63,925 bases of DNA, filler included, from Klebsormidium nitens (GCA_000708835.1; 5 parts of 5 records of this genome joined end to end with filler, not necessarily neighbours in it), one strand, 5' to 3'; positions 43,490 to 61,315 are shown, counted from the whole stretch's first letter. Notes: a model not told the origin generated them from the letters alone. A program made the numbers and translations.

Positions 43490-43722
43490 CCGGATTGATG
43501 TGGCGATTGAAGAGTTTCTGGGCGTCCACCACGAAGTACCTAGGTTTCTGATCTGCACTCTACACTTCACCATCGTTTAGGCGGAAGGGGTCGAAGAAGG
43601 AAAACTTCTCTACTTTGTCTTTCAACGGCGACCAGGCGTGATCGAACGAGCCATACGTCCCGGCAACGACGCGTTTCAACCGTGGTAGCGTGCAGAGCGA
43701 CTAAAAGGTGGATTCTACATGG

Positions 43723-44382
43723 TCAATGCCAGTCCATCGCGAGCGCTATGTTAGGGAACTGCTCCTTCATGATGTCCTTGATCTTCGATGCTATCTCCTT
43801 GTGCTCGCGCTGTGAGCCGTTGCTACTCCTGAGGTCCACGTAATGTATCCAGTCCCTCGCGTTCATGGTCATGTACAGCTTGGTCTGCGTGGACATGGGC
43901 AGGACGAAACGTGCACACTCCTTTGCTATGCCTTTCTCCAATGCCTGCGAATATGTGGCGTACGAATCCTTCCACAGCCTATCCTGCTCCGCCACGAACC
44001 AGGCCTTCACGTCTGGCGGCAGGTCGTCCACGGACGACTGCCTGTTCTTGGGGTCCTGGCTCCTGGCTTCGTACACCACGTTCGCATCGGCCTTTGCATA
44101 CCTGGTGCTGAATTGCTGAAAAGTAGCCGACCTGTGCCTCAGGATCTGCTCTGCTATGGCTCTGCTGGTGGTTATCTCGACCGTCATGGAGGCGGTCTCG
44201 AAGACCGACCAGTGACGATTCTTGATGCAATAACGCAACAGCTTGGCACCGCTCTCGTAGTTCCTCTGGTTCTGGGGATTGGAAACCCGCGCGGCGTGCA
44301 CTATGATGTCCTCCGGCCCTAGCCCCTCCAGTTCGCCCGCGCCTCTGCTGAGTGCCACCAGCTTCACCTCGCAAGCTGCCAT
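43723..44382 (-). CDS. thyX: FAD-dependent thymidylate synthase ThyX
   Basis: AARVSNP, LLRYCIKNRHWSVFE, signature RHRSATFQQFSTRY (RHRx7S), KECARFVLP, RDWIHYVDLRSSNGSQREH; intronless; likely ATG at 44382. Confidence 0.96.
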   Translation of the reverse strand: MAACEVKLVALSRGAGELEGLGPEDIIVHAARVSNPQNQRNYESGAKLLRYCIKNRHWSVFETASMTVEITTSRAIAEQILRHRSATFQQFSTRYAKADANVVYEARSQDPKNRQSSVDDLPPDVKAWFVAEQDRLWKDSYATYSQALEKGIAKECARFVLPMSTQTKLYMTMNARDWIHYVDLRSSNGSQREHKEIASKIKDIMKEQFPNIALAMDWH

Positions 44383-44431
44383 CTTTTTATGTGGACTACA
44401 AAAATACAAATCCAGTGCCTAAACCGACACA

Positions 44432-44758
44432 TCACTTTCGTAGCACGTTCAGAAACATCCCGATCATCTCCCCGTGACCCTCCAAGGGGTATACTCCGCC
44501 TACCGCGTCGGTCAGTCGCCAGCAGGTGTATATCGCCAAGTCTCGGACTCTGGATTCGATACTCAATCTAGGTATGGCAAGAGCCAGCTGCGAGTTCAAT
44601 CTACGCAGACGTTCTCCGTTATCGTCCTTGCAGAGCTCCATCTTGGCAATGATCTCCAGCAGCACCCACACCCGATCTTCCACCGTGGACTCGGGAGACA
44701 GAGTCGAGAATCTCCTTTGGAGCTCGCCCAGGACCTCGGCAGTCGTCCGAAACCACAT
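44432..44758 (-). CDS. Hypothetical protein (virus-like block)
   Basis: Open frame MWFRTTAEVLGELQRRF...MFLNVLRK*, co-oriented with and directly upstream of thyX; no recognised domain. Confidence 0.45.
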   Translation of the reverse strand: MWFRTTAEVLGELQRRFSTLSPESTVEDRVWVLLEIIAKMELCKDDNGERLRRLNSQLALAIPRLSIESRVRDLAIYTCWRLTDAVGGVYPLEGHGEMIGMFLNVLRK

Positions 44759-44838
44759 CCTTGTCTGACGCAAAAGGAAAAAATTGGATCCATGCACCCG
44801 AAGTCGAACTTTCGGACGGTATGCTCGCAGTTTTCCTA

Positions 44839-45000
44839 CGCCCGAAACCGACCGCCCGAGAAATTTCTTTCGGGCGCCACCTTTCGCGAAAATATACTCG
44901 TAGGTTTTTCACGCCCGAAACCGACCGCCCGAGAAATTTCTTTCGGGCGCCACCTTTCGCGAAAATATTCTCGTAGGTTTTCTACGCCCGAAACCGCCCG
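44839..45000. repeat. 73-bp direct repeat (2 full copies plus a partial) with TTTCGCGAAA palindromes, upstream of a TATA box
   Basis: cgcccgaaaccgaccgcccgagaaatttctttcgggcgccacctttcgcgaaaatat at 44839 and 44912; TATAAAA at 45092-45098. Confidence 0.85.
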
Positions 45001-45890
45001 AGAAGTTTCTTTCGGGCGCTTTTCAAGCAGTATGCTCGCGGTATGCCTCAAAGCGAAAGCCCGAGAAGTACTTTTCGGACGGAGATCGCTCTATAAAAGG
45101 AGGTTCCTCTCGTTCTCATTCTCAAAAACGCACTTGGCCTCCCCCTTCCCAACAGCTTGCAAGCAACTCCCTCGCACACAGCATCCTTCTGCCTATCTGC
45201 CCTTTCAGCAGCGGCACAGCTTAGCCGCTTCCTTCTCTCCCAACAGCACCCTATTCTCCCACAGCTCGCTTCCCTTTCCTCCACTCACCAGCCAGCAGCA
45301 CCTCATACTCGCACAGCTCGCTTCCTCCAACACCAGCAGCAACGAGGCCAAGTCGCGTCAGATAGTCACGCCGGCCGGCCTTTTGCCTTGTCCTTGTTTT
45401 CCTTTTTGCTGGTCTGCGCAGACCTCTCTTTTCTTCTTCGTGTCTCTGCAAGCCTGGCCAGGCTGTCGTGTCATGCTGCTCTTCGGCAGCTCTTTTTTCT
45501 GCCGTGTCTTAGCTGGGCTCCCGCTTCTTTGCGGCTCCCCTCCACTGTCTTTGTCTTTCGCTGGCCTCTCGGGCCTTGTAGCTGCCTCGTGCAGCTCCTT
45601 CCGAGAAGTATCAAGGTGAGCATTAGTGAAGTAGGATATCTTGAAGTTACTCCATGATCTGCTTCTCGTTTGCTTTGCGAAATATTTGCATAGAAATGTT
45701 CCCTCTGTTGCTCTTCAAACTCGTTGTTTGCAGCATCCTCGCATCGACTACCTCCTGAGGCTCCGCTCGCATCCGCTAGCTGGCCTCTCGGCCCTTGCAG
45801 CTGCCTTGTGCCGCTCCACACCTATCAATCAGATAAGTTCCCTCTCTTGCTCTCCAAACTTCTGATGTTTGCAGCATCCTGCCTCCTTGA

Positions 45891-46093
45891 GTAGGCTCCG
45901 CTCGCACCCGTCGGGCAGGGTGCCGATAAGAGCGAGCATTTGCGGCTCTGTGGGTAGTGCCGTTTGTCCACGGTACGCATACCACTCTGCCTGTAGGCTC
46001 CGCTCGCACCCGTCGGGCAGGGTGCCGATAAGAGCGAGCATTTGCGGCTCTGTGGGTAGTGCCGTTTGTCCACGGTACGCATACCACTCTGCC
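45891..46093. repeat. 102-bp tandem duplication
   Basis: gtaggctccgctcgcacccgtcgggcagggtgccgataag...accactctgcct begins at 45891 and again at 45993. Confidence 0.92.
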
Positions 46094-46579
46094 TTTTCAC
46101 TCCGTCTGACGATGTCGAAAAGCTGTCCGAGCTACTGATCACTTTTACGCTCCACTCACAGGTCCTGATCATCGAGCCTTTTGACGAGCGGACGCGACTG
46201 GAGATCACTACCCTGTGCCTCGTCTACGATCAGGGGCTCGACACACCATCTATGGTCCAGATTTGAATCAAACGGAGGCAAGTCTCGACTGAGTCTTCGA
46301 ATGCATTCGCTGCTGAGTCATATGCACAGGGCGTTTCGTTCCTTCGTAGCAGCAATGACAAAATCCCCCCTGCCGCCTTTGTCTTAAGAGTAACATGTTT
46401 CTTTTTCTTCTTACAGGATATCGCTCGCCGCATGGAGGAGTCTTCGTTTGCACTCTGAGTCCTTTTTCTGGGCGTGTGCTTTCTATGTGACGTGATTCTG
46501 GGTTCTTTTCTGGGCGTATGGAATGATTTTTCTGTGACTTTTCTTCGACTTCTTGGCTGTCAGTCTGTCTTTCTGTCTC

Positions 46580-46970
46580 TGTCGAGTCGGTCGGTCGGTC
46601 AAGTCCAGTCGAGTCGGTCGGTCGGTCAAGTCCAGTCGAGTCGAGTCGGTCGGTCCGTCGAGTCCAGTCCTGTCCCGTCGGTCAGTCCCACCAGCTATAC
46701 ACACCCTACACTAGACACCCTACACTATACACACCCCTCACCCTCTTACCCACTCCAAATACCCTACTGCCTTACCCTTCCCTCCCACACACCCTACTTC
46801 TTAACCCTTTCCTCCCACATACCCTACTGCCCTTACCTATTCCTCACACCCTAATACTACCCTTACCTATCCCTCACACCCTATACTAACCTTACCTCCC
46901 TCACACCCTATACTACCCTTACATATCCCTCACACCCTATACTTACCCTTACCTATCCCTCAAACACACC
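46580..46970. repeat. (GTCG/GTCCA)n microsatellite followed by a C-rich ~28-bp degenerate tandem repeat (ccttacctatccctcacaccctatacta)
   Basis: Read directly from the sequence; the opposite strand is G-rich. Confidence 0.88.
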
Positions 46971-47163
46971 CGCAGTAGAACCACAGATGGCTGCTGCGAC
47001 CCGCAGCTGGGGTTCGATTCCCCATGTGGTTGGACGACGTTGCACATCGAATTATTGCCGGTTGAGATTACTGGTTGTGAATACGTTTCTTAGTATACTT
47101 TTCTCTCTACATCATGAAGACAACAACCAGCAACCAGCAAGGTTGGGGAACTTAAGGGAGTTC

Positions 47164-47770
47164 AGAGATCGATCTGTCCAATCTAGAAAGATCAGATCGA
47201 TCACCCCTTTTCTTAGGGTCATTGAAAAATGGACCGGTTGCCGGTTGCTGGATGGTGACGTGGCACATCGAAAAGNNNNNNNNNNNNNNNNNNNNNNNNN
47301 NNNNNNNNNNNNNNNNNNNNNNNNNNNNNNNNNNNNNNNNNNNNNNNNNNNNNNNNNNNNNNNNNNNNNNNNNNNNNNNNNNNNNNNNNNNNNNNNNNNN
47401 NNNNNNNNNNNNNNNNNNNNNNNNNNNNNNNNNNNNNNNNNNNNNNNNNNNNNNNNNNNNNNNNNNNNNNNNNNNNNNNNNNNNNNNNNNNNNNNNNNNN
47501 NNNNNNNNNNNNNNNNNNNNNNNNNNNNNNNNNNNNNNNNNNNNNNNNNNNNNNNNNNNNNNNNNNNNNNNNNNNNNNNNNNNNNNNNNNNNNNNNNNNN
47601 NNNNNNNNNNNNNNNNNNNNNNNNNNNNNNNNNNNNNNNNNNNNNNNNNNNNNNNAGAGATCGATCTGTCCAATCTAGAAAGATCAGATCGATCACCCCT
47701 TTTCTTAGGGCCTCTGAAAATTGATCCGGTTGCCGGTTGCTGGGTGGTGACGTGGCACATCGAATTATTG
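47164..47770. repeat. ~110-bp repeat present on both sides of an N gap
   Basis: agagatcgatctgtccaatctagaaagatcagatcgatcaccccttttcttaggg...gtggcacatcgaa at 47164-47273 and 47657-47764, with a few differences. Confidence 0.8.
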
Positions 47771-47952
47771 CCCTGACATGCGGTGGGATGCCCTGTTCCT
47801 CAGGGCACTGGCGTTCCTCCTCTGAAGGCGCCCAGAGAACAAAGTCTCCCTCGTTCTCGTAATGATCATCGAATCCTTCGCTTCGATGTACGCCGATCGG
47901 GTCCATGGGCGCGATATAGGAAGGTCGCACGAAAAGTGACGGGTACGCGGAT

Positions 47953-49551
47953 ATGGACCCTAGATTGCACATCCTGTCGGTCGGCGAAGAGCGCATCGTC
48001 GCTACTTGTCTCGCGGACGTCAGAGACAGGACCAACTCCCTAGCCGCTCCTCTGATCAGGAGTCTCAGTGACAGAACGTGCACGGCCAGGGCCGTAGAGT
48101 TCCGCGACTACATGTTCGACAAGCAGTCTCTGGAGGCCTTGAGCGAGTACCTCTCCACATCTACGAAGCTGGAAAGGATAGTCTTTGGGAACGGCTGTGC
48201 TTCCGAGATATGCATGGCCGGGGCCAGCTTGTCTAGAGTGATCGGTGCGTGCGACAGGGATGTCTTCATAGAGGGCTCCTTGCCGCGGGCGATGGGCCAC
48301 GTGAGCGTCATCCAGGCGGCCGACCCTACCGGGCAGCGATTGCGACGGGCTCTGCTCTCCTTCGAGCCGGAGCACTGGGCGTACGACTGGTCTTCCGACT
48401 CGGAGACGCTGGGTCTCATGCCTTCCGTCACCAACGGAGACTTCGTCTGGACTCGACTACATCCGGATGGCATCCTGACCTTGAACGTCACGGACGAGGA
48501 TATGCTACAAGTGGAGTGGAGCGTTTGCGCGAACGAGCTCAAGAGCACGGCGCTACACTCTGCAGACGACGTCGCCTCATTCGCCAGGGCTCCTCGCACT
48601 TTCGGCTCCCTAGAGAGCTTGACGGTCTCCTCGTGCGGATCCAAGGGACTCACTTACTTCGGACGGCACCTAGCGGCGGAGACGCGCGTGAGACGCATCC
48701 GTTCGGAGGGTCCGTTGGCGGACTCGGTGGCTCTGTTGAAGGGATTCGAGGAAGGGCTCGTCGAGGGGAGACCCTATGAGGCCGAGTGCACGTCGCATCT
48801 CGCTCATGACGGATTGGGCGTGAGGCTCCGCAGGCTGGAGAATCTGTGCTTCCTCAGGTGCTACCGTCTGACTCTGCACGTCCGAGTAGACGGTTGCAAC
48901 GGTTTCGAGAGGAGGCGCTTCGACGAGACCATGACGTTCCTGCTCGGGTGGTTCCCGAAGCTGGAGGCCCTGGAGGTGGACATCGGCGGAGACTCTATGG
49001 GCGGCCCTTACCAAGGGTGCGTCCCCATAGGGCGCTTCGCAGCTGCGGTGCCGCGGACGTTGAAGGAGCTGCGGCTCGCTTTCGGTGGGGCGTCCACGCT
49101 CTTCTGTGCCGCGAGTCGGCTCCACGAGTTCTTAGAGGCAGCTCGATGCCGGTTGCGGTATCTCAGCATCGAGGGCTGGGCAGCCGGAGCGGAGGCCCTA
49201 TCCAGAGTGGTACGGATCGAGGGTCTCGAGCGACTTTGCATACCTCAGGCTTGCACCTCCGTAGCAGGCTTGAGGAACGCTTTACGGAGACGGATGAGAG
49301 AGCTCGACGTGGGAATCTCGCTGCTGGGCAGGAGGGATATAGCAGAGTTCGCTCGCCTCGTCCAGAGCTTCGCCAGACCCACCCGTCCGAGCAAGCTGCT
49401 GTTGCGGAACGGCGTCCGAAGCGAGATGATGGGGGAGCTAGGACGAGCTCTGAGGGCAGCAGGATGCTTCGACTACGTCTACACGTCTGCCGATGAGAAG
49501 ACGATCACGATCTGGCTCGCTCTGCCCGAGGAAGAAAAAGATTGCCAATGA
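47953..49551 (+). CDS. Intronless 532-aa protein with degenerate leucine-rich (RNI-like) repeats
   Basis: Repeated LxxLxL motifs: KLERIVF, SLESLTVSSC, RLENLCF, FPKLEALEVD, TLKELRLAF, RLRYLSIEG, GLERLCIP, RMRELDVG. Confidence 0.6.
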   Translation: MDPRLHILSVGEERIVATCLADVRDRTNSLAAPLIRSLSDRTCTARAVEFRDYMFDKQSLEALSEYLSTSTKLERIVFGNGCASEICMAGASLSRVIGACDRDVFIEGSLPRAMGHVSVIQAADPTGQRLRRALLSFEPEHWAYDWSSDSETLGLMPSVTNGDFVWTRLHPDGILTLNVTDEDMLQVEWSVCANELKSTALHSADDVASFARAPRTFGSLESLTVSSCGSKGLTYFGRHLAAETRVRRIRSEGPLADSVALLKGFEEGLVEGRPYEAECTSHLAHDGLGVRLRRLENLCFLRCYRLTLHVRVDGCNGFERRRFDETMTFLLGWFPKLEALEVDIGGDSMGGPYQGCVPIGRFAAAVPRTLKELRLAFGGASTLFCAASRLHEFLEAARCRLRYLSIEGWAAGAEALSRVVRIEGLERLCIPQACTSVAGLRNALRRRMRELDVGISLLGRRDIAEFARLVQSFARPTRPSKLLLRNGVRSEMMGELGRALRAAGCFDYVYTSADEKTITIWLALPEEEKDCQ

Positions 49552-49561
49552 CAGTAGGAAG

Positions 49562-50116
49562 ATGCATCTCTTCTCTACTTCTACCGTCTTGGTCGTAGCC
49601 CGCGTTCTCTTGTTCGCATGCGTCACCGGAGGGGTCATGTGGTGGTTCTACCTGAAGGAGGAGAAAAGGACCAAGCGCCCTGTAGGAGTGGTAGGATCGT
49701 GCGATACGGAGAGAGTCGTGCAGCCCCAGGAATCGGAAAAGACTCCGGAGTTGCAGGATATACCCCCTGGTCACGAAAAATACGCTAATGTATTCGAGAA
49801 GCATGCCGAGAGGTTCGACGATGCATACGATAAGATCCGGGAGGAGACACTCTGCCTGGCCAAGAGGAGGCGGCAGTATTCCATCATGTTGGACGCTTCG
49901 TCCAGGTGCATGCGTTGCCTCTACAATATTCGCATGTGGATGCACAACGACCTCGCCATGGAGGAACGCATGCGCACCTTCGAGCTCATATGCGACGACT
50001 ACTTCGCCAGATGCCTCAGGCATGCGTATGATCGTTCGTACACTCCTGCCGACGAGACGCTGATCCCGCGGCGTTGGAATAGGAGGTGGTCGGATCCATC
50101 TCCGAGCGTCGCGTGA
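49562..50116 (+). CDS. Hypothetical protein with an N-terminal transmembrane helix
   Basis: MHLFSTSTVLVVARVLLFACVTGGVMWWFYL hydrophobic stretch. A diverged paralogous fragment at 52472-52532 differs mostly at synonymous positions, which supports coding status. Confidence 0.65.
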   Translation: MHLFSTSTVLVVARVLLFACVTGGVMWWFYLKEEKRTKRPVGVVGSCDTERVVQPQESEKTPELQDIPPGHEKYANVFEKHAERFDDAYDKIREETLCLAKRRRQYSIMLDASSRCMRCLYNIRMWMHNDLAMEERMRTFELICDDYFARCLRHAYDRSYTPADETLIPRRWNRRWSDPSPSVA

Positions 50117-50164
50117 AAGAAATATTCTGAGTTGAGATACGGATCTGGTCTATACCGTCCGAGA

Positions 50165-50244
50165 TGCTGCGTTGGCATACTGCTGCGTTGGCGTGCTGCG
50201 TTGGCGTGCTGCGTTGGCATATATTGCTGCAGCTTCTGCAGCAT
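50165..50244. repeat. Four copies of TGCTGCGTTGGC plus a tgctgcag-ctt-ctgcagca hairpin upstream of tnpA
   Basis: Copies at 50165, 50181, 50194 and 50207; hairpin at 50226-50244. Confidence 0.9.
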
Positions 50245-50317
50245 TGACTAGAAAACACGGCCTATAAAGAAGGCATTAGGCACCATGTGCGTCTCATTCT
50301 AAATCTTTCTTCTCGAC

Positions 50318-50992
50318 ATGTACAGTAGCTTTCGGAGAGCTAAGGACCATTTTGGCGTCTCCTCTAGCACCCCGCGTAGATGGGCTAATGAAGGAAAGAT
50401 CGCCACCAAGCGCACCGCAGGCAACCACCGCGTCTTCTCCATCCCCAGCCTCGAAGAGAAAGAAACTCGGGCATGCATCGCCTACTGTAGGGTCAGCTCC
50501 TCCAAGCAGCGCGACGACCTGCAGCGACAGAGGAGGTTTCTATCTGACCAACTCCCCAGACACGAGAGTGTCTCGGACGTGGGCTCGGGGATCAACTTCG
50601 AGAGACCAGGACTGCTATCCATTCTGGAACGAGTCCTACAGGGCAGAGTATCGGAGGTGGTGGTTGCCAGCAAGGACAGACTGTGCCGTTTCGCATTCGA
50701 GCTCGTGGCCTGGATATTCGAACGTCAAGGGACACGGATCGTGGTTCTCGATACGCGAGATAAGTCACCGAGCGAGGAGTTCACAGAGGACATCCTGGCC
50801 ATCATGCAAGTATTCTCTTGTCGATGGAACGGGAAGAGGCGCTACAGGGGTCCACAAGAGCGGGGGCGCGATAAAAGAAGCGGAGGTGGCTCTAGCATTC
50901 CCCTCGAGGTGCAGGAAGATAAGGGCCTTCCCGACGGGACATCAGCGGCTAATCCTGAGGAAGATGGTGGGAGGGTGCCGGAAACTGTATAA
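50318..50992 (+). CDS. tnpA: IS607 serine recombinase/transposase TnpA (N-terminal MerR-like wHTH plus serine-recombinase catalytic domain)
   Basis: FGVSSSTPRRWANEGKIATKRTAGNHRVF (HTH); IAYCRVSSSKQRDDLQRQ (catalytic Ser codon at 50495); DVGSGINFERPGL; DRLCRFAFEL; EEFTEDILAIMQVFSCRWNGKRRY. Confidence 0.95.
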   Translation: MYSSFRRAKDHFGVSSSTPRRWANEGKIATKRTAGNHRVFSIPSLEEKETRACIAYCRVSSSKQRDDLQRQRRFLSDQLPRHESVSDVGSGINFERPGLLSILERVLQGRVSEVVVASKDRLCRFAFELVAWIFERQGTRIVVLDTRDKSPSEEFTEDILAIMQVFSCRWNGKRRYRGPQERGRDKRSGGGSSIPLEVQEDKGLPDGTSAANPEEDGGRVPETV

Positions 50993-52325
50993 CGAGACGG
51001 TGGCCATGATCCGGGACAGGCGTCTCCCGTTTGCGAACGTAGAAGCATTCGAGGAGGCAGAGCGACGGCGGAAGACCAGGCTTGAGGATAGAAAAAGGAA
51101 GAAGGCGGAGGATGATGGCTCCGAGTTCGAAGAGGTGCACTACAAGGGGACGAGTCACCCTTGGATGGACAAGGTGTACGTCAAGAACTTTCTGGTGCCC
51201 GAGGACAGCGACTTCATGAAAGCGAACCCCTACCTGAAAGAGATACCCAAGGAGACCAGACAGCAGGCGGTGGAGGATGCCATTGAGGCGTACAAGGCTG
51301 CCTTCAGCAACATGGCAGTGGGGAACATCAGCAACTTTGAGGTGGGCTTCAGGAAGAAGAAAGACCCGCGTTGGTCTATCGCGGTCGCCTTCAATGCGGT
51401 TTCGGGGAGCAGGTTCTGGCCACGCAAGGTCAAGGATTTCGGAGAGCTGGTCGTGGCGGAGCCACGGCACCTGAGGAAGCGCTACGGGCGGGAGCTGAAG
51501 ATCTCGAAGGATCAGCTCGGGCGCTACTGGATGGTCATCATGAACGACAAAGGACCCAAGGCTACGACGGAAGAGGCGGCGAAGGGCGTCGAAGAGCTGC
51601 GCGAGTCGACCCGCGAGAACCAAGCGGGCGACAAGCCGGTGGCTGCCATCGACCCGGGGATTCGGACTCGACACACCATCTACATGACGGACGGGCGGCT
51701 CGTGGAAGTGGAAAATCAGGACATACAGAGGATCGTGCGTCTCTGTCGGCACGTGGACAGGTGCATATCGGCTCTGAGCAAGGGAGAGCTCGCGGTGTCC
51801 AAGAAGCACCTGAAGAGGAACCCGAAAGCATCCGTGATGGCCCTCTTCGACCACTATCGGCCTTCGAAGAAAGTCCAGGGCCAGCATGTTGTGCGTCTGA
51901 GTGGCGAGGACAAGAACAGGATACGACAGAAGATGCACCAACTGAAGGCGAAGATAGAGAGCTTGAAGAACGAGATAGACGACCAGACGGTGGCCTACCT
52001 GCTTCGCGAATGCAAGACGGTCCTGTTGCCCCCATTCGACATGCACTCCATGTCCACAAGGCTGCACCACAAGACGGCGAGGGCCATGATGCAGTGGAGA
52101 CACGGGACGTTCAAGACCAAGCTCGTGGAAAGAGCTCCCGGCCGGGGGGTGCGGGTCATGATAGTGTCGGAGGCATACACCAGCAAGACCTGCGGGGCGT
52201 GCGGGTGGCTGCATCCCAGTCTGGGTGGGAGCAAGCTATACGTCTGTCGAAGGTGTGGGGTAGAGATGGACAGGGACCACAACGGTGCCCGGAACATATT
52301 CCTGAGAGCGATTAGGTCAGAATGA
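50388..52325 (+). CDS. tnpB: IS607-type TnpB / Fanzor2 RNA-guided endonuclease (645 aa from the first ATG)
   Basis: RKIRAFPT...GGCRKLYN; RuvC-I AAIDPGIRT (D at 51651); VLLPPF where the canonical Glu would be, with the alternative Glu in VSEAYTSKTC (52170); zinc finger CGACG...CRRCG; RuvC-III MDRDHNGARNI (D at 52275). No internal stop. Confidence 0.95.
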   Translation: MKERSPPSAPQATTASSPSPASKRKKLGHASPTVGSAPPSSATTCSDRGGFYLTNSPDTRVSRTWARGSTSRDQDCYPFWNESYRAEYRRWWLPARTDCAVSHSSSWPGYSNVKGHGSWFSIREISHRARSSQRTSWPSCKYSLVDGTGRGATGVHKSGGAIKEAEVALAFPSRCRKIRAFPTGHQRLILRKMVGGCRKLYNETVAMIRDRRLPFANVEAFEEAERRRKTRLEDRKRKKAEDDGSEFEEVHYKGTSHPWMDKVYVKNFLVPEDSDFMKANPYLKEIPKETRQQAVEDAIEAYKAAFSNMAVGNISNFEVGFRKKKDPRWSIAVAFNAVSGSRFWPRKVKDFGELVVAEPRHLRKRYGRELKISKDQLGRYWMVIMNDKGPKATTEEAAKGVEELRESTRENQAGDKPVAAIDPGIRTRHTIYMTDGRLVEVENQDIQRIVRLCRHVDRCISALSKGELAVSKKHLKRNPKASVMALFDHYRPSKKVQGQHVVRLSGEDKNRIRQKMHQLKAKIESLKNEIDDQTVAYLLRECKTVLLPPFDMHSMSTRLHHKTARAMMQWRHGTFKTKLVERAPGRGVRVMIVSEAYTSKTCGACGWLHPSLGGSKLYVCRRCGVEMDRDHNGARNIFLRAIRSE

Positions 52326-52492
52326 GCCCCATATGAACCCGGCGTGCCGGGGGATGGGTCGGAGAGATAGCTCCTAGTCTCAGAAGGTTTGAGAGACTTG
52401 GCACCAGGCGAGAGGTAGGAGATCGTACGGTGCACAGAGACTTGAGCAGGATTGCTTAGGTTTCAACTATCGGCGGCGATACTCAACCATGT
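52326..52492 (+). ncRNA. Candidate omegaRNA scaffold plus guide (boundaries inferred; may begin inside the tnpB 3' end)
   Basis: Hairpins cccat..cccgg-cgtg-ccggg..atggg (52328-52358), ggag-agatag-ctcc (52361-52374), agtctc..gagact (52376-52398) and tgagca-ggat-tgctta (52443-52458) lie between the tnpB stop and the right junction. This is the position where TnpB/Fanzor omegaRNAs are encoded. Confidence 0.6.
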
Positions 52493-52532
52493 TGAACGCT
52501 TCCTCTAGATGCATGCGTTGCCTGTACAACAT
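52472..52532 (+). pseudogene. 3' fragment of a paralog of the 49562-50116 gene, truncated by the IS607 element and by a gap
   Basis: RRYSTMLNASSRCMRCLYN versus RQYSIMLDASSRCMRCLYN; 50/62 nt identical by hand count (52471-52532 versus 49868-49929). Confidence 0.8.
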
Positions 52533-52585
52533 NNNNNNNNNNNNNNNNNNNNNNNNNNNNNNNNNNNNNNNNNNNNNNNNNNNNC

Positions 52586-53277
52586 TCAGACAAGACCAAG
52601 CCCGCCTGGGTGGACGCCGGGGTCGCGCACGACTTCTCCGAGTTCGCCGTCTCCGGGAAGAACCTCTGCGGCATCAACCCCGGGCAGGGCACAAGGTCTT
52701 CTGCACCGCCGACTGGACCGCGGCAGCGCCCGTCTTCAAACCGCTGCAGGGAGACGGCATGCTCCGCAACCTGTCCCTCTCGGGAACGAGCCTGTGCGGA
52801 GCGGACGCCCGTCCCGGCGTAGACAACATCTTCTGCAGCAACGACTTCATTTCGAAACCATTGACTCAAGTACAAGGCAGCGGCAACGTGACCGCTCAGG
52901 GGAAGGGCAGGCTCTGCGTCGTGGCCAAGGACCAACGAGTGTTCTGTACCGACTCTATCGTCCAAAACCCCGTCTGGACCAAGAGAGGGGACCTCGCCAT
53001 AGACCTCGCCATGAACGAGTCGGGCGGGATATGTGCTTTGAACCCCGACGGGACCATCTTTTGCCAGCCGGACCTGACGTCGGGGAAATGGGTGGCCACG
53101 AACGTCGCCGAAAAGAAGAACGTGAACCTCGCCACGAATATTCATGGGACGAAGCTCTGCATCTTCAACAGCGATAAGGCCCCCGCTTACTGCCATGACA
53201 ACGTCTTTGCAGGCGACAAGGCGGGTTGGTATGGGTTGGCAGCTGCTGGACAACGGTTCGGGTTGGAAAAAGTGTAG
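52586..53277 (+). pseudogene. Tectonin/lectin-like beta-propeller repeat protein with two Cys per ~40-aa repeat; 1-nt frameshift near 52685; 5' end in gap
   Basis: Repeats PAWVDAG..FAVSGKNLCGINPG|HKVFC; PVFKPL..LSLSGTSLCGAD..NIFC; ..GRLCVVAKDQRVFC; PVWTK..GGICALNPDGTIFC; KWV..TKLCIFNSD..AYC. The first repeat is in a different frame from the rest. Confidence 0.55.
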
Positions 53278-53281
53278 GCCC

Positions 53282-54022
53282 TCATGCCGTCAGAGCTGGC
53301 GCGGGTGCTGGAACGTGGGTAGTGGGTTCGAGCGTGCGATCGACCCAGAGAGGGTTGAGCCCGGCTAGGACTCCTCCCAGTAGAGGGCCGACGATGAAGA
53401 CCCAGATGTGAGTCCATTGTTTCCGATCGTTGCTCCCGGATGCGACCGCCGTTCCGAGGGATCTCGCGACGTTTATAGAGCAGCCGTCTAAGGGAAGGAG
53501 TGCCAGATGACAGACCAGGACCGCGCCACCGATAGCGATGGGAGCGTGTCCGTACAACTTGGTAGCGGCGTAGGAAGTGTTGAGCACGACCGTTACGAGG
53601 AAAGCCGTCGCCAGTATCTCCGCCAACAGGGCTTGCCACAGGGCGTGTCCATCTAGGACGTGATTGACTCCTTTGCCGCCCGCGTCGTAGAGGTCCCAAT
53701 TGCTCACGAGCCTCGCGTAGCAGGCGCCGCATATCGCCCCTATGACCTGGGCGACGATATACAACGCAGCCTTCTCTATAGATATCATCCTCTGCAACAA
53801 GAAAGCCAGAGTCACGCTCGGATTCAAGTGAGCTCCCGAGATGGAGCCGAAAGCGTACGCTAAGGTCCCTATAGTGCCTCCAAATACGGAAGCGACACCC
53901 AGAGGCGCGAGAATGCTGCCGTTATCATAGATAGGGAGAGCGGGGTAATTCGTGAGAGACAGTGTGATGATGAAGAGGAAAATGCCACTTCCGACGAACT
54001 CGGCCGCTACCGCCTTGTACAT
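53282..54022 (-). CDS. Aquaporin (MIP family), intronless; NPS and NVA in place of the two NPA motifs (alternative start at 54073)
   Basis: AEF motif (VAAEFVGS), ISGAHLNPSVT, YIVAQVIGAICG, LLAEILATAFLV, HLALLPLDGCSINVARSLG, WVFIVGPLLGG. Confidence 0.93.
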   Translation of the reverse strand: MYKAVAAEFVGSGIFLFIITLSLTNYPALPIYDNGSILAPLGVASVFGGTIGTLAYAFGSISGAHLNPSVTLAFLLQRMISIEKAALYIVAQVIGAICGACYARLVSNWDLYDAGGKGVNHVLDGHALWQALLAEILATAFLVTVVLNTSYAATKLYGHAPIAIGGAVLVCHLALLPLDGCSINVARSLGTAVASGSNDRKQWTHIWVFIVGPLLGGVLAGLNPLWVDRTLEPTTHVPAPAPALTA

Positions 54023-54218
54023 GATGGCGACCGATACCTGATAAACTACAAGCGAGAATATTATGCCGGCCATACGCCCGAGGCCGCGGCAGGCATCGTT
54101 CGCCGGCTTAGGGCAAGCAGGCCTCCCCTTGCCGGTGCTATAGGATTGCGGTCGATGCACATGGTGCGTTTCGCGAATATCTTCGCGGTAAGATATATCG
54201 AGTATCGAGTACCTTTTG

Positions 54219-55069
54219 ATGGACGAAGCGAGGATCCAACGGAACATAGAGGAGGCGATAACGCTCTTGAGACGTGGCCTCTCTGGGGACGACATCCTCG
54301 CGATCTTCCAGGCCCGAAACGAAGGTCGCGGACCCACGTACGCTCTGCACCCCGAGGCTTGGGCCACCGTGATGCGGCGTGCGAAGCGGAGAGCTTCTCG
54401 CCTAGATCCCATCCCCGTCCCGACTGCAGCTCCTGCAGGGCCGAGTGAGCTATTTCAGCTGGACGAAGCGAGGATCCAACGGAATACCGAAGAGGCTATA
54501 ACGCTCTTGAGACGTGGTCTCTCTAGGGACGACATCTTCGCGATCTTCCAGGCCCGAAACGAAGGTCGCGGACCCACGTACGCTCTGCACCCCGAAGTCT
54601 GGGCCACCGTCATGAGGCGTGCGAAGCGGCGAGCTTCTCGCTTAGGTCCCATCCCCGCCCCGACTGCAGCTCCCGTCCCTCCACGACCTGTACCGAGACC
54701 ATTTGTACCTCCCGTCTCTCCACGACCTGTACCGAGACCACAGGTACCTCCCGTCCCTCCACGACCTATACCGAGACCACAAGTACCTCCCGTCCCTCCG
54801 CGACCTGTACCGAGACCACAGGTACATCCCGTCCCTCAGCGACCTACACCGAGACCTCCCGTAGCTCCCAACCAGGATCAGAATAGACCAGCTACCCTGT
54901 TCGACTGCCACGACGTCCCTGGTGATGGGAATTGCTTTTACTCGGCCGTCGCGGTCGCGTTGGCAAACAGGCCGCTTCCTCTACCTCAACTACGAGAGAG
55001 GGCTATGCAGTTGCGCAACGCCGGCCTCGAATACTTTGATAGGTTCCAAGAGGCGCTCTTCGTCAATGC
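54219..55069 (+). CDS. OTU-domain protein copy 1 (two helical ~60-aa repeats, Pro-rich repeats, start of OTU); truncated by gap
   Basis: MDEARIQRNIEEAITLLRRGLS...RRAKRR x2; (PPVPPRPVPRPQV)n; LFDCHDVPGDGNCFYSAVAVAL. Confidence 0.75.
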
Positions 55070-55089
55070 NNNNNNNNNNNNNNNNNNNN

Positions 55090-56493
55090 GTGATGCGGCG
55101 TGCGAAGCGGCGAGCTTCTCGCCTAGATCCCATCCCCGTCCCGACTGCAGCTCCTCCACAGGCAAAGCCGACTGAGCTATTTCAGCTGGACGAAGCAAAG
55201 ATCCAACGGAACACCGAAGAGGCTATAACGCTTTTGAGACGTGGTCTCTCTAGGGACGACATCCTCGCGATCTTCCAGGCCCGAAACGAAGGTCGCGGAC
55301 CCACATACGCTCTGCACCCCGAAGTCTGGGCCACCGTCATGAGGCGTGCGAAGCGGCGAGCTTCTCGCTTAGGTCCCATCCCCGCCCCGACTGCAGCTCC
55401 CGTCCCTCCACGACCGATACCGAGACCATTTGTACCTCCCGTCTCTCCACGACATATACCAAGACCACAGGTACCTCCCGTCCCTCCACGACCTGTACCG
55501 AGACCATTTGTACCTCCCGTCTCTCCACGACATATACCGAGACCACAGGTACCTCCCGTCCCTCCACGACCTATGCCGAGACCACAGGTACCTCCCGTCC
55601 CTCCACGACCTATGCCGAGACCACAGGTACCTCCCGTCCCTCCGCGACCTATACCGAGACCTCCCGTAGCTCCCAACCAGGATCAGAATAGACCAGCTAT
55701 CTTGTTCGATTGTCACGACGTCCCTGGTGATGGGGATTGCTTTTACTCGGCCGTCGCGGTCGCGTTGGCAAACAGGCCGCTTCCTCTACCTCAACTGCGA
55801 GAGAGGGCTATGCAGTTGCGCAACGCCGGTCTCGAATACTTTGATAGGTTCCAAGAGGCGCTCTTCGTCAATATTTTTGGTCTGCCCTCTGGTGACAGAA
55901 ACCGAGTGCGTCGCGGACGACGCGCTACCTTCATGTATCCGCAATGGGCGAACCACGTCCAGATAGAATGTGTCGCCCGCGCTATGCGGTGTCGGATACG
56001 CGTGTTCGGCATGTGGCCCGATGTATATAGTCTCGCCGTAAGACTCGCAGAACCTTTGACGCTGGAACAACTGGACCTCCTGTGCTCGACGGTAGACGAT
56101 GGGCAACTACGGAGGCGGAGAAGTCATTACGTAAACGATGATCCGAACAACTACGACAGAACCATTTCATTGATAAACTGGACGGACACACACTTTGGAG
56201 TTGTCTTGCCACACGTGAGGGGCAGGCCGAGGCAACGTGTGAGTGCTAGCGGGAATATACCCCCTGCGAATGTCAGTTATGGAGAGGCTCTGCAGGTGAC
56301 ACAAAGGCTCGCTGGACGCGAGGCGATACTCGTGAGGGAGAGGCGGGAGAGAGCGGACCGAGAAAGACAGATGAGGGGCAGGAGTGCGGCAGGAGTACGG
56401 CAGAGTGCTACGGTCAGTGCCAGGTATGCGAACACGAGTAGCAACGAGGCTCTGGCACTCGCCTTACAGGAGTTGGAATTCTCAGAAGATTGA
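55090..56493 (+). CDS. OTU-like cysteine protease (deubiquitinase) copy 2 with helical repeats, Pro-rich linker and C-terminal ubiquitin-binding-like motif; 5' end in gap
   Basis: DVPGDGDCFYSAV (Cys at 55738), LRERA, WANHVQIECVARAMRCRIRVF, ISLINWTDTHFGVV (His at 56191), C-terminal SNEALALALQELE. Confidence 0.85.
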   Translation: MMRRAKRRASRLDPIPVPTAAPPQAKPTELFQLDEAKIQRNTEEAITLLRRGLSRDDILAIFQARNEGRGPTYALHPEVWATVMRRAKRRASRLGPIPAPTAAPVPPRPIPRPFVPPVSPRHIPRPQVPPVPPRPVPRPFVPPVSPRHIPRPQVPPVPPRPMPRPQVPPVPPRPMPRPQVPPVPPRPIPRPPVAPNQDQNRPAILFDCHDVPGDGDCFYSAVAVALANRPLPLPQLRERAMQLRNAGLEYFDRFQEALFVNIFGLPSGDRNRVRRGRRATFMYPQWANHVQIECVARAMRCRIRVFGMWPDVYSLAVRLAEPLTLEQLDLLCSTVDDGQLRRRRSHYVNDDPNNYDRTISLINWTDTHFGVVLPHVRGRPRQRVSASGNIPPANVSYGEALQVTQRLAGREAILVRERRERADRERQMRGRSAAGVRQSATVSARYANTSSNEALALALQELEFSED

Positions 56494-56525
56494 CTCTTTT
56501 TCTTCTGATCGAATCGTAGGATAGG

Positions 56526-58472
56526 ATGACCACGGCCACCATCAAGACGAGGAAACTGCTCGTAGATAGCCCGGACGCGGATGACTTTCTGATCGTCTCC
56601 AACGGTGTGCAACTGGTGACGAACGTGCTCGTAGACGGGTCCCTCTCCGCGTCGGTCCCCGTGATGACCTTGCAAGCAGGAACGATTCAGTGCTTCGGCA
56701 GCAACGGCGACGCCTGGTTCCTCTCGCGTGCGGCGGACGGGACGGTCTCGCTCGGGCAGAACGTAGCGGGGTCTCGCCGTGCACTGGCATCGCTCGCGTG
56801 CTCAGTGGACGACGGTGCATCTGGATTGGGAACGTTGAGCGTCAGGTCTCTACAGAATGTCGACCAGGCCGGTCGTTACCCATTTCGGACGCGCATTGAC
56901 ACCGACAAGAGTCTGGTGACGCAGTGCTCCACCGACGGCACGGCTTGGACGACGATACGGAGAGATGCTGCTTCCATCGCTACCTTTGCGCAATCCATCC
57001 TCCCCGCATCGGGCAATCTCAACGTGGGGACCGGCAGCAACCGCTGGCTTGGACTGTATGCTTCCAACGTAGATGCGGATACGATCGCATGTGGGGCCGC
57101 GACGTTCTCGTGTAATCTATCGGTTTCGGGCGATGCTTCGGTCGGGGGGTCGTTGCAGGCGAGCAGTGCCGTGGTGGGAGGGAGTTTAGCGGTGACGGGT
57201 CCCGTCGCTCTATCGAACGCTCTGACGGGCACCTCTGCGACGTTTTCTAGCAACGTGACCATCGCTGGATCGTTCTCATATTCCAACCTCGCACTCAGTG
57301 GGAGTTTATCCGTGGCTGGTCTCACTACTATTTCAAACACTCTGAGAGCCACTTCGGCGACGTTCTCCAGTAATGTGACCGTGTCTGGAACTTCTACTCT
57401 CTCGAGCGATGCGAACATCAGAGGAGCCCTTGCTGTGACCGGGCCACTCACTCTTTCCAGCGCCCTTTGGGGAAATTCGGCGTCTTTCTCAGGTAATCTA
57501 AGCGTTTCTGGAGCTACGACTCTCTCCAGCAATACTACGGTGGGAGGAAGCTTGGCAGTAACCGGCCCCGTGACTCTGTCCAGCACGCTAGGAGGCACTT
57601 CTGCGACTCTCTCTAGCAACCTGACCGTCTCTGGATCTACGACTGTATCGGGCGCTCTGGGCGGAACAACAGCAGCTTTTTCCAGCAACCTCAGCGTCTC
57701 TGGAGTTACGACGCTATCGGGCGCTCTGGGAGGCAGCTCTGCTACCTTTTCGAGCAATCTGACCGTCTCTGGTACTTTTACTCTCTCCAGCAATGCGACG
57801 GTAGGCGGAAGCTTGTATGTCAGCGGGCCCGTCACCCTCTCTAGTACCCTGGGAGCCACGTCGGCTACTTTTTCCAGCAACATGAGCGTCGCCGAAATAA
57901 CCTCTGGAACCCTATCAGCGAGCGGACCGGTCACTCTCTACAACACCCTCGGAGCCACCTCCGCCACGTTTTCGAACAACGTGTCGATTGGCGGCACCCT
58001 GTCGGTAGCGAGCAATCTGGCGGTCACCGGCCCCGCCACCTTTGCATCCAACATCACCATCTCAAACACCGATCCGATCAACTCTCACAAGACGTGGGCC
58101 TCTTGGACCCCATCTTCTGATTCTAACGCGACGTTAACGACTTTCTTCGCGAGATACACGTCGATCAATAAGAGAGTCACGGTCGCTTACTCGCTGAGTT
58201 TCACTGTCGCGTCGTCCGTGGCCAGTACCAGCATCTCCCTGCCTCCAGGACATTCAGTTGCGTATTCGGCACAACGCACGCAGATCTTCAGCAAGAACGG
58301 CGGGTCGAACATCTACGTGACAAGCTACGGGAGTATCACCGTTCCGACCGCAGGGACTGCGACAGGTCTGGTCACGGCCGACAGCACTACTTCTCGGCTA
58401 GTATTTGCCCTCACGAACTTCTTGGCGGGTACCTGGACTGCATCAGGTACCTTGGATTATGAGATCGCTTGA
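56526..58472 (+). CDS. Virion fibre / tail-fibre-like protein with Ser/Thr/Gly-rich beta repeats
   Basis: GNLNVGTGSNRWLGLYASNV motif; more than 10 repeats of (A)TFSSNLxVSGxxTLS / GGSLxVTGPVTLSS; C-terminal WASWTP...ARYTSINKRVTV domain. Confidence 0.7.
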   Translation: MTTATIKTRKLLVDSPDADDFLIVSNGVQLVTNVLVDGSLSASVPVMTLQAGTIQCFGSNGDAWFLSRAADGTVSLGQNVAGSRRALASLACSVDDGASGLGTLSVRSLQNVDQAGRYPFRTRIDTDKSLVTQCSTDGTAWTTIRRDAASIATFAQSILPASGNLNVGTGSNRWLGLYASNVDADTIACGAATFSCNLSVSGDASVGGSLQASSAVVGGSLAVTGPVALSNALTGTSATFSSNVTIAGSFSYSNLALSGSLSVAGLTTISNTLRATSATFSSNVTVSGTSTLSSDANIRGALAVTGPLTLSSALWGNSASFSGNLSVSGATTLSSNTTVGGSLAVTGPVTLSSTLGGTSATLSSNLTVSGSTTVSGALGGTTAAFSSNLSVSGVTTLSGALGGSSATFSSNLTVSGTFTLSSNATVGGSLYVSGPVTLSSTLGATSATFSSNMSVAEITSGTLSASGPVTLYNTLGATSATFSNNVSIGGTLSVASNLAVTGPATFASNITISNTDPINSHKTWASWTPSSDSNATLTTFFARYTSINKRVTVAYSLSFTVASSVASTSISLPPGHSVAYSAQRTQIFSKNGGSNIYVTSYGSITVPTAGTATGLVTADSTTSRLVFALTNFLAGTWTASGTLDYEIA

Positions 58473-58511
58473 ATGGTCCCTCCTTTTTTCACGTCTCTCT
58501 GATAGCAGCCC

Positions 58512-59693
58512 ATGTCTTCATCCGTGTACTGCCCCACCTTGCACACCAGCTACGGCTCGGTCGCACCGCTGTCCCCATTCGGCGAGAAGGTCGGCGTGCA
58601 TAAGACGAATATCTTCAATCTGAAGCCTAGCTACGGCCTCAGCGTCATACGAGACGACACGTACACGACCGGCAACGGCACCGTCACTGGAACTTTGGGG
58701 CAGCCAGAATTCGTCCTGACGGCTCCCGCATCGTCCTCAGCTAGCCTGGTGAGTGCGGAGCGTGGTCGCTATATCGCCGGCTTCTCCGCCGAAGTAGGGA
58801 TCGGGGTGCGGGTGCCACAAGCCCTGACGGGCACTCAGACTTTTCAGTGGGGATACACAGACAGTAGCTTCCAGAACGGCTTCTACTTTCAGATCTCTGC
58901 CTCAGGGCTGTCTGCCAACATCGTGCGCAACGGGGTAGTCAGCAGCATCCCAGCCTCCTCCTTCAATTGCGACCGTCTCGATGGCACCGGCCCCAGTGGC
59001 CAGATCTTGGACATGACCAAAGGCAACATCTGGCACATCGTCTACTCGTGGTATGGTTACGGAGCGGTCAACTTCCAGCTGGTCTGCACCGATACTTTCG
59101 GTAATCAGTTCGTGCAGTCGCTCCACCGTTGGGCGCCGTCCGGTCAGACTTCCACGATGTTTCCGAACCTCAACATAAGTACGTTGCTGAATAACACCGG
59201 AAGCGGCACCATCAATGCCTACGTCGCCGGCCGCCAGTATTCAATATACGGGGAGGAGAGCACGACTCACCGCGTCACCTCCGGTTACAACCAGGTCACC
59301 GTGACTTCGGCGACCTGGAAGCCCATAGTCTCCTTCCGTCGCAAAACCGGTTGGACGCACTGCGGCGTTCGTCTGATCTCCTACGATGCATTCGCGAATC
59401 AGGATGCATACCTGCAGGTGCGGGTGACGTCTACGCTGACGGGAGCGTCCTGGACTACCGTACAAGATTCTCTCGATGCGGAGACCTGCCTGCAGGTCGA
59501 CACGTCCGCGACCGCCATCAGCGGGGGTCTGGTGCTATACACGACCGGCGTGAGCAGCGCAAAGGCCGGCGGATCGACCGACGTGCTCGACATTTACCTC
59601 AACGAGACGGACATCATCACGGTATGCGCAAAGTGCATCACCGGCTTCAGCGGCGCCATCACTGCAGTGCTGCGAATGGAAGAACTGTGGTGA
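58512..59693 (+). CDS. Phage/giant-virus-type structural protein with a DGTGPSG motif (paralog 1)
   Basis: SPFGE...AERGRY...WGY..NGFYF...FNCDRLDGTGPSGQILDMTKGNIWHIVYSWYGYGAVNF. The family is recalled from phage virion proteins; no search was run. Confidence 0.65.
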   Translation: MSSSVYCPTLHTSYGSVAPLSPFGEKVGVHKTNIFNLKPSYGLSVIRDDTYTTGNGTVTGTLGQPEFVLTAPASSSASLVSAERGRYIAGFSAEVGIGVRVPQALTGTQTFQWGYTDSSFQNGFYFQISASGLSANIVRNGVVSSIPASSFNCDRLDGTGPSGQILDMTKGNIWHIVYSWYGYGAVNFQLVCTDTFGNQFVQSLHRWAPSGQTSTMFPNLNISTLLNNTGSGTINAYVAGRQYSIYGEESTTHRVTSGYNQVTVTSATWKPIVSFRRKTGWTHCGVRLISYDAFANQDAYLQVRVTSTLTGASWTTVQDSLDAETCLQVDTSATAISGGLVLYTTGVSSAKAGGSTDVLDIYLNETDIITVCAKCITGFSGAITAVLRMEELW

Positions 59694-59739
59694 GACAGCG
59701 GAGCTTCTTTTTCTCGGGTACACTCAGGAGGGCACACCC

Positions 59740-60957
59740 ATGTCGCTCATTCCGGGAAACGCCACCGTGGTAGGGAATCTGGCCGTGGCGGGCAACATAA
59801 CTTCTTTCACCAATCAAGTTCCGACGGACTCCTGCGGCGACATCCGGACGGTCGAAAAGACCAACATCATCGACCTCAACTCTACCTGCGGCCTCACTCA
59901 GCTGCGCGACGCGGTGACCACGACCGGCACCGGCACTTTGACGGGCACCGCAGGGCAGCCGGAGTTCGTACTGACGCTCACGGGCTCCGGCGACTCCGTA
60001 CTCCTGCAGAGTGCCGAGCGCGGCCGCTTCGTAGCGGGGTACACGTTCGAGGTATGCCTTATCCTGCGCTCCGTCGTCGGTGCCGCCGCCTGGGGGGCGG
60101 GGCAGTATCTCAAGGTCGGCTACTATGATGGCACCAACGGCTTTTACTTCCTCGTCGACTCGACCGGCCTGAACGCGTGCACGATGCGCAACGGCGTGGA
60201 GACCAGGACCAATCAGGCAAACTTCAACGTGGACAAGATGGACGGGACCGGCCCGAGCGGGCTGGTCTTCGGTATGACCACCGGGTGCATGTTTAAGATC
60301 ATCTATGGCTGCTACGGCTACGGGGCGTTGGTCTTTGCTTCTTGCCCGGTCACTTCTGCAGGCGTGCAGTATCTGCAGCACATGCACCGCATGGTCCCCG
60401 GCACGCAGACCTACTCTATGTACCCCAACCTGCCGCTGTCTATCTACGCCACCAACGGCACGACCGCCACGAGCCGCACGTTGTACATCGCCGGTCGTCA
60501 GTATTCCATGATCGGACACTGGCTGCCTCACAAGCGCAACAACGCGGCGTACGTTCTCAACCGCGGAGGGGTCTCCACGACCTTCTTACCCATCATCAGC
60601 CTGCGCCGCAAGAGCAATTACCTCCACTGCCCCGTACGCCTAAAGGGCATCGACGTCCTCTCCACCACCGACTGTCTGATCCAGGTCCGCGTTGCGACGA
60701 CCGTTACCGGCGGCACCTGGACGGATCTACAGGATCAGCCAACCACCGAGAGCGCTCTGCAGTGCAACACGAGTGCGACCGCCGTGTCGGGAGGGATCGT
60801 GATCTACGTGGAGATGCTCCAGGCGGGGCGCATGCTGAACGACAAGGACCAGGTAGAGTTCGACTTTAGGGACAACGACGTGCTTACGTTATGTGCGCGC
60901 ACCTTGACCGGCTTCACGAGCATCAATTCTGTCCTGCGCGTCGGAGAAGGATTCTGA
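59740..60957 (+). CDS. Phage/giant-virus-type structural protein with a DGTGPSG motif (paralog 2)
   Basis: Collinear with paralog 1: KTNIIDL, GQPEFVLT, SAERGRF, NGFYF, DKMDGTGPSG, YGYGA, AGRQYS, SATAVSGG. Confidence 0.65.
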   Translation: MSLIPGNATVVGNLAVAGNITSFTNQVPTDSCGDIRTVEKTNIIDLNSTCGLTQLRDAVTTTGTGTLTGTAGQPEFVLTLTGSGDSVLLQSAERGRFVAGYTFEVCLILRSVVGAAAWGAGQYLKVGYYDGTNGFYFLVDSTGLNACTMRNGVETRTNQANFNVDKMDGTGPSGLVFGMTTGCMFKIIYGCYGYGALVFASCPVTSAGVQYLQHMHRMVPGTQTYSMYPNLPLSIYATNGTTATSRTLYIAGRQYSMIGHWLPHKRNNAAYVLNRGGVSTTFLPIISLRRKSNYLHCPVRLKGIDVLSTTDCLIQVRVATTVTGGTWTDLQDQPTTESALQCNTSATAVSGGIVIYVEMLQAGRMLNDKDQVEFDFRDNDVLTLCARTLTGFTSINSVLRVGEGF

Positions 60958-61315
60958 GTCATCTGTACAAGGGGTCTTTCTTCGACTCCTTTCAGTCAAC
61001 AATCGAAGACGAGGACGGGTCTCATCACCAAGTACTTATTTCTAGAAGATTCATTCGATGCACGGTTTAGGGCCGCTCTCGGCTGAGGTCTCCACTTAGG
61101 GCGGTCGATGGACGGTTTCGGGTCCTTGTTCATCGAGCCGGTGGACCGTCGTCGATTCGGCAGGACCGCGAGGGACGAGATCAGGATCAGCACGCCGCAC
61201 GGTGCCTTCGCCTTCGCCACGTCATCCGTCCGAGCGGTCAAGCTCGGCCACGTGGTCGCTCCAGTTCGGACCCTACTTAAGACGGACGGATCGGATAGAG
61301 ATACTCTCATTCGAC

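Follow-up and report, generated by a model that had tools for sequence, protein, structure and literature searches.

The window analyzed here is a 63,925-nt stretch of DNA, filler included, from Klebsormidium nitens (GCA_000708835.1), and one 18-kb piece of it (positions 43490–61493; 57% G+C, three assembly gaps) carries a transposon of the IS607 family on the plus strand. The element comprises a transposase gene, tnpA (50318–50992), an open reading frame (ORF) for a nuclease of the Fanzor2/TnpB type (50388–52325), which runs in the +1 frame relative to tnpA, and a 147-nt right end (52327–52473) with the features of a guide-RNA scaffold. This is probably an intact IS607-Fanzor2 transposon, lodged in giant-virus DNA or in an insert derived from it, in which two proteins are read from tnpA. 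The element itself belongs to a known kind, as IS607 elements with Fanzor2 are well described in giant viruses and protists (PMC3627910, PMC3673617, PMC10530073, PMC10432273). As for the overlap of the two genes along the whole of tnpA, this property of the family seems to have gone undescribed.

tnpA is intact and encodes a 224-aa serine transposase. The protein scores 152 bits against the NCBIfam model for IS607 family transposases (NF033518; cut-off 110), matches the Pfam Resolvase and MerR helix-turn-helix (HTH) domains, and has as its closest solved relatives the catalytic domains of IS607-type TnpA proteins (ISC1904/IS1535 TnpA in the PDB). All 28 of the columns that are invariant in a 30-sequence alignment are retained, including Ser60 (50495–50497) of the R-V-S-S motif. 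An initial annotation of the window had assigned the locus to the IS607-Fanzor2 family and had reported the catalytic serine as kept; both statements hold, the first on the strength of the NF033518, Resolvase, and TNB/HTH_OrfB matches. It had also pointed to an unusual T-P-R-R-W sequence in the HTH. The proline (Pro19, 50372–50374) is real and unique among the 30 homologues, the others having L, I, M or V at that column, before R-R-W. As expected of the family, tnpB is located 3′ of tnpA on the same strand.

The nuclease core occupies positions 50916–52325, in a frame that is unbroken to its end. Across 41 homologues, no variation is seen at D422-P423-G424 (DPG of RuvC-I, 51651–51659), Glu595 (52170–52172), Tyr597 or Thr598, and the DRD (52269–52277) that follows the second CxxC is nearly invariant. 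LPP stands at the position of the canonical glutamate, and a glutamate (E595) is found instead six residues ahead of the first CxxC. The zinc finger (52191–52256) consists of two CxxC pairs separated by a spacer of 14 residues (family range 12–18), with the DRD thereafter. Such a relocated-glutamate signature defines Fanzors and their bacterial sister TnpBs (PMC10711439); the rearranged RuvC layout and intact zinc finger described in the initial annotation were confirmed by motif and alignment checks. Cas12f1-like TNB and HTH_OrfB_IS605 domains are also present. An AlphaFold model of the nuclease (predicted local distance difference test, pLDDT, of 75) has as its best solved-structure match the mimivirus Fanzor2 9b0l (E 5e-20, template modeling (TM) score 0.67), ahead of TnpB and Cas12f. 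On these features of sequence and predicted structure, the nuclease is assigned to the Fanzor2 (relocated-glutamate TnpB) lineage, with an intact catalytic layout and predicted cleavage activity.

Over its 2.2 kb, the element aligns at 72–77% DNA identity with five metagenome loci (L001, L002, L003/L004, and L005) whose flanks are unrelated. These relatives share promoter motifs, ATG positions, and the right end with the element in the window. In addition, L001:7733–7879 is a solo 147-nt right-end scaffold, 87% identical to that of the window and without an adjacent tnpA or tnpB, and can be read as a remnant or as a miniature derivative. A search for copies at different sites, as proposed in the initial annotation, gave these five loci with different flanks and the solo right end, and just one copy in the piece itself. 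Both genes are intact in the window and in L002. L001 has an intact tnpA and one stop in tnpB, L005 an intact tnpA and one frameshift plus one stop in tnpB, and L003/L004 two stops in tnpA together with one frameshift and one stop in tnpB. No close copies were found in IMG/VR with a single-protein scan, and the right-end DNA pattern had no match in IMG/VR or the metagenome collection.

Homology to TnpB starts at about 50916, and there is no ATG at that point. The first internal ATG of the core (50955) is absent in L001, and initiation at this site would remove conserved residues that match the first profile positions. The TnpB frame is open from 50280, and the ORF that begins with the ATG at 50388 overlaps 605 nt of tnpA and is intact for 645 aa. 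Its first 176 aa (50388–50915) make up an N-terminal extension located inside tnpA. The extension is mostly disordered in the structural model, apart from a short helix predicted with confidence and a hairpin, and its sequence includes a short basic cluster, a possible nuclear localization signal (NLS). The +1 ATG is found at +70 in three close copies, and in four distant copies the two ATGs are 4 nt apart. Moreover, the N-terminal extensions of distant relatives (TnpB 37–40% identical) align with the off-frame translation of tnpA from the window. The initial annotation overlooked both the missing ATG of the TnpB core and the overlap that would solve the expression of the nuclease.

Several measures indicate that the +1 frame of tnpA is under constraint of its own. 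Across tnpA, all seven intact elements compared have no +1 stops, where synonymous-codon shuffles lead one to expect 2.3–4.3 (P 0.0015–0.045 for each element, values that are not independent since the elements are related); the +2 frame of the same seven contains 2–11. At four-fold degenerate sites under conserved residues, summed over 12 comparisons between two element groups, tnpA is 56% identical and tnpB 29%, and third-position divergence is lower in tnpA than in tnpB at equal first- and second-position divergence. Likewise, the similarity of the +1 proteins exceeds that of synonymous shuffles in eight of eight comparisons: none of 1000 shuffles reaches it in four of them, and 9–46 of 1000 do so in the other four.

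The pattern extends well beyond the close copies. When 1.84 billion representatives were queried with the extension alone, 209 clusters were recovered, mostly of 500–740-aa proteins matched at their N-terminus, and nine of ten sampled proteins were TnpBs without a resolvase domain. In IMG/VR, tnpA was located upstream in 48 of 80 loci, and tnpB was in the +1 frame relative to it in 46 of the 48. Twenty-two non-redundant intact IMG/VR elements hold 52 stops in the +1 frame, versus 121.5 expected and 347 in the +2 frame. A chance open frame arising from GC-richness was rejected on the evidence of the AT-rich elements of this set, which have 0 stops in +1 versus 21–27 in +2. The same overlap is found in a cyanobacterial IS607 of Geitlerinema sp. 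FC II, in which the long ORF begins 67 nt after the tnpA ATG. As this layout is identical, the idea that the overlap is a eukaryote-specific adaptation was also rejected.

The avoidance of stops in the +1 frame, the constraint on synonymous positions in tnpA, and a degree of +1 protein conservation that TnpA by itself would not produce make it most likely that tnpA is dual-coding. Maintenance of the overlap by selection is strongly supported by these sequence comparisons, and the arrangement appears to be an undescribed architecture of the lineage. Since the cyanobacterial element shares the layout, the overlap is, by the same comparisons, ancestral to the lineage and no viral invention. No description of a conserved whole-gene tnpA/tnpB overlap was found in IS607/Fanzor2 papers or in full-text searches of one literature library; what the literature does mention is a partial ORFA/ORFB overlap in prokaryotes and, for an Acanthamoeba copy, an insertion of 100 aa at the N-terminus.

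Some variation in the arrangement was also observed. Among L006–L009 and many IMG/VR loci, second starts fall into two classes, 4–13 nt or 58–73 nt after the tnpA ATG. Members of the former have a TATA-like word 8–13 nt upstream, while the latter includes the window and the cyanobacterium. On a 2.7-Mb ENA contig (P0059), one 577-aa ORF consists of a TnpA N-terminus, the +1-frame extension, and TnpB, and has either arisen by mutation of a copy or is a fusion that occurs naturally. In the window, a three-codon ORF in the third frame (50380–50390) has a stop that overlaps the ATG of the nuclease, which may be a matter of chance.

Three known systems are informative for comparison. The mimivirus IS607 with Fanzor2 (ApmFz2/L79 of Acanthamoeba polyphaga mimivirus, PDB 9b0l) resembles the element in the window as a giant-virus IS607 with a TnpA and a relocated-glutamate nuclease. 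A conserved non-coding RNA accompanies ApmFz2 at the 3′ end, and the protein begins with a disordered region that harbors a working NLS (PMC10530073); a comparable 3′ RNA and disordered N-terminus are present in the window. However, the two nucleases match in sequence in their C-terminal 80 residues only (E 1.8e-10) and are 16% identical in structural alignment. The disordered N-terminus of ApmFz2 is published as 64 aa (PMC10530073), whereas that of the window is 176 aa and overlaps nearly all of tnpA.

The second system, the cyanobacterial IS607 (ISArma1-type; Geitlerinema sp. FC II, L093), has tnpB in the +1 frame after tnpA, with a start at +67 nt versus +70 in the window, and its TnpB shares extension motifs with the window. 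It differs in being bacterial and in an identity of only ~26%. The protein, encoded at L093:2722–4368 and found in identical form on at least five contigs of that assembly, has kept the DPG and relocated glutamate but lost the zinc-finger cysteines. Cyanobacterial relocated-glutamate IS607 TnpBs are the proposed ancestor lineage of Fanzor2 (PMC10711439, PMC3673617). Finally, the characterized TnpB of ISXfa1 (IS607) has a right-end RNA of ~150 nt, much like the window. ISXfa1 inserts at a dinucleotide core, and the first base of its flank is fixed and counts as part of the scaffold (PMC10711439); it is bacterial and was likened to the window by description only.

The right end of the element is a conserved structured RNA scaffold with a predicted guide-RNA (omega RNA or reRNA) role. 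Its multi-stem fold is conserved, with 97% of cells paired and eight compensatory pairs, versus 30–44% and 0–2 in slid-partner controls, and the single-sequence folding z-score is −2.4. No Rfam family matched this RNA. Six copies, one of them the solo right end of L001, are alike up to the terminal CGG at 52473 of the window (TGG in one L001 copy) and then diverge, in agreement with the end given in the initial annotation. Its start, 50318, did not hold up, this being only the ATG of tnpA, with TATA and initiator motifs upstream. The adjoining flank (52474–52493) differs in every copy and would serve as the template for the guide, a role taken from PMC10711439, with a length assumed from the family.

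The left-end region (50140–50317) is less sharply bounded, and its uncertain outer limit probably falls between 50117 and 50262. The homology of L002 and L005 opens with a CGG placed 191 nt ahead of the start codon of tnpA. By analogy, the element in the window may have its left end at the CGG at 50140, which precedes the same codon by 178 nt. In a comparison of five copies, the sublineages cannot be aligned upstream of the TATA box. A short GG-type core shared by both junctions may be reflected in the CGG/TGG at the right end of six copies and the left-end CGG of L002 and L005. A search for terminal inverted repeats found weak internal pairs only, which fits the IS607 family. Four tandem copies of a 13–16-nt motif (50165–50225) are candidate TnpA binding sites, and other copies of the element have different short repeats in this place. 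Further downstream lie a TATA box (50263–50268), within an 8-nt block that is invariant in five copies, and an initiator-like motif (50292–50298), also invariant in five copies, ~22 nt ahead of the tnpA ATG and with a presumed promoter function. The 28–29-nt spacer between the two is variable among the five copies.

The setting of the element is giant-virus-like rather than bacterial. All close relatives are on metagenome contigs, several of which carry giant-virus genes, and one relative is borne on a contig of 1.02 Mb. Genes on the contigs of the relatives include those for mRNA triphosphatase, protein kinase, DNA methylases, HNH endonuclease, D5-type primase, and an ATG8 homologue. Neighbors of the element in the piece include ThyX, an aquaporin, an OTU-like protein, and a repeat fiber protein. 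In L005, the element is adjoined by homologues of two neighbors, namely the family of the upstream ORF and an mRNA triphosphatase whose beginning lies at the end of the piece. No close prokaryotic relative was found in a search of one genome each for 185,579 prokaryote species, and the nearest bacterial protein named is ~26% identical. By context and by this search, the host is a eukaryote or a eukaryotic virus, the category by which a Fanzor2 is recognized. The initial annotation had emphasized a tnpA co-located with the nuclease in a virus-like segment, a view that the giant-virus genes of the relatives and the lack of a close prokaryotic relative bear out. The assembly gaps and a low-complexity stretch of 2.5 kb would be in keeping with a draft eukaryotic scaffold.

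In this family, TnpA recombines DNA at a dinucleotide core, and RNA-guided cutting employs a guide from the right flank (PMC10711439, PMC6188088, PMC13565253). By analogy, TnpA would mobilize the element in double-stranded form, recombining it at a short core of the GG type. The nuclease would take up the right-end RNA, whose guide would be copied from the flanking sequence beyond 52473, and would cut sites matching that flank, helping the element to persist. A single mRNA would be transcribed from the one left-end TATA/initiator promoter, as we infer here. TnpA would be translated from the first AUG (50318) and the nuclease from the AUG at 50388, reading through tnpA in the +1 frame, with nearly the whole transposase gene coding twice. 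The overlap would supply the nuclease with its N-terminal extension, which is mostly disordered, basic, and Ser/Pro-rich.

A more tentative proposal is that the extension was a translated, functional module already in the cyanobacterial ancestor, and that the close start codons let this lineage, unlike other IS607 or IS605 elements, colonize giant viruses and eukaryotes as Fanzor2. With starts 4–70 nt apart at the 5′ end of the mRNA, both proteins could be made under cap-dependent translation of one ORF per mRNA. The variable part of the extension in viral copies would then be free to become an NLS.

Among the competing explanations, the one that survives best concerns mobility. The element could be an immobile relic, its genes intact by recency and its transposase disabled by the HTH proline. 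A proline found nowhere else at a hydrophobic column, one copy in 18 kb, and breaks in three of five close relatives lend some weight to this possibility, which is nevertheless doubtful given that the remaining invariant residues of TnpA are all kept, neither ORF is interrupted across 2 kb, and the fold of the right-end RNA is preserved. As for the statement in the initial annotation that the element is apparently complete and autonomous, both genes are indeed intact, and the element may be autonomous, though the piece holds a single copy and the proline is odd.

It is unlikely that the extension is not made at all, with the nuclease starting at the internal ATG (50955) or, around 50877, at a codon other than AUG, and with the +1 frame kept open by a different constraint on tnpA. 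ORF callers do sometimes choose a short form of the nuclease (P0002, P0010, and P0012), most of the extension is predicted to be disordered, and four IMG/VR elements have only a partial overlap. Against these observations, the internal ATG is missing from L001 and its use would sacrifice conserved residues, as noted above, and the avoidance of stops in one frame, the conserved +1 ATG, and the above-shuffle similarity of the +1 protein would all be left unexplained.

More improbable still is a programmed +1 ribosomal frameshift in tnpA that joins TnpA and the nuclease into one protein. The single ORF of P0059, with its TnpA N-terminus leading into +1 sequence and then TnpB, has the form such a fusion would take, and the conserved part of the extension starts after the HTH. 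Yet P0059 may be just a mutated copy, no shared slippery site was seen, and none of the nine sampled long proteins of the TnpB type has a resolvase domain. Three observations place translation from two AUGs ahead of both the frameshift fusion and the untranslated extension: the +1 frame is already open where tnpA begins, it possesses a conserved ATG, and its translation is conserved. Lastly, a bacterial IS607 from a contaminant is scarcely credible, for although the family stems from bacteria and a relative in a cyanobacterium has the same architecture, the prokaryote search gave no close relative and a nearest named bacterial protein of ~26% identity, the neighbors and relatives are giant-virus-like, and the promoter is of the TATA/initiator type.

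Translation of two proteins from tnpA in an intact, giant-virus-like element is the preferred explanation, and a number of points weigh against it. The support for dual coding comes entirely from sequence comparisons, and the compared elements, as stated, are related. The GC-rich piece is rich in long chance ORFs, and the open frame of the window would be poor evidence were it not for the AT-rich relatives. The proline in the HTH may cripple DNA binding by TnpA, the piece holds a single copy of the element, three of five close relatives are broken, and the left end is placed by analogy. With respect to the nuclease, the score against guided_TnpB (NF040570), a model built for prokaryotic proteins, is 95.9 bits, slightly below the curated cut-off of 100. 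The spacing from DPG to the relocated glutamate is 170 residues, compared to 120–160 in the published pattern (PMC10711439), so the literal pattern fails. The spacing is also 170 in L002 and is 134–137 in distant relatives; the greater length is a longer insertion, with no feature missing.

The locus adds one more intact, transposase-bearing Fanzor2 to those in giant-virus-like DNA, and supports the route from bacteria to giant viruses without changing it. If almost all of tnpA is dual-coding, annotated Fanzor2/TnpB starts in this lineage would often be wrong, and the “disordered N-terminus with NLS” of Fanzor2 would gain a concrete origin. Dual coding would also lock the evolution of transposase and nuclease together, and would explain in simple terms how a bacterial element with two genes comes to be expressed in eukaryotic surroundings.

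The flanks of the element have features of their own. An upstream ORF of 207 aa (49493–50116) and a fragment of its paralogue (52472–52532, plus strand) bracket the element. The fragment begins exactly at the right junction and is 82% identical to 49869–49929, with mostly synonymous differences; the 5′ half of the paralogue is not found upstream of the element, and a gap (52533–52584) covers the remainder. Target duplication at the right flank was rejected on account of this divergent paralogy. The element of L001 likewise lies between two paralogues, of a DNA methylase, and L005 has a homologue of the 207-aa ORF after its right end.

Elsewhere in the piece, a 421-aa ORF antisense to tnpB (50949–52214, minus strand) is taken as a chance ORF given the G+C content. 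The gene for ThyX, a FAD-dependent thymidylate synthase, is located at 43723–44409 and that for the aquaporin, a major intrinsic protein, at 53282–54412, both on the minus strand. The low-complexity stretch (44474–47000) has a strong C skew and tandem duplications (102 nt, 100% identical), which is odd for a compact viral genome, and repeats (47164–47764) are also found on either side of a 380-N gap. One or more OTU-like protease genes (54216–56493) are duplicated internally over a long stretch (86% over 780 nt), have proline-rich repeats, and are broken by a 20-N gap. Two neighboring paralogous ORFs of 393 and 405 aa (58512–59693 and 59740–60957), for which no Pfam match was found, are adjoined by a 648-aa repeat protein with a weak bactofilin-like match.

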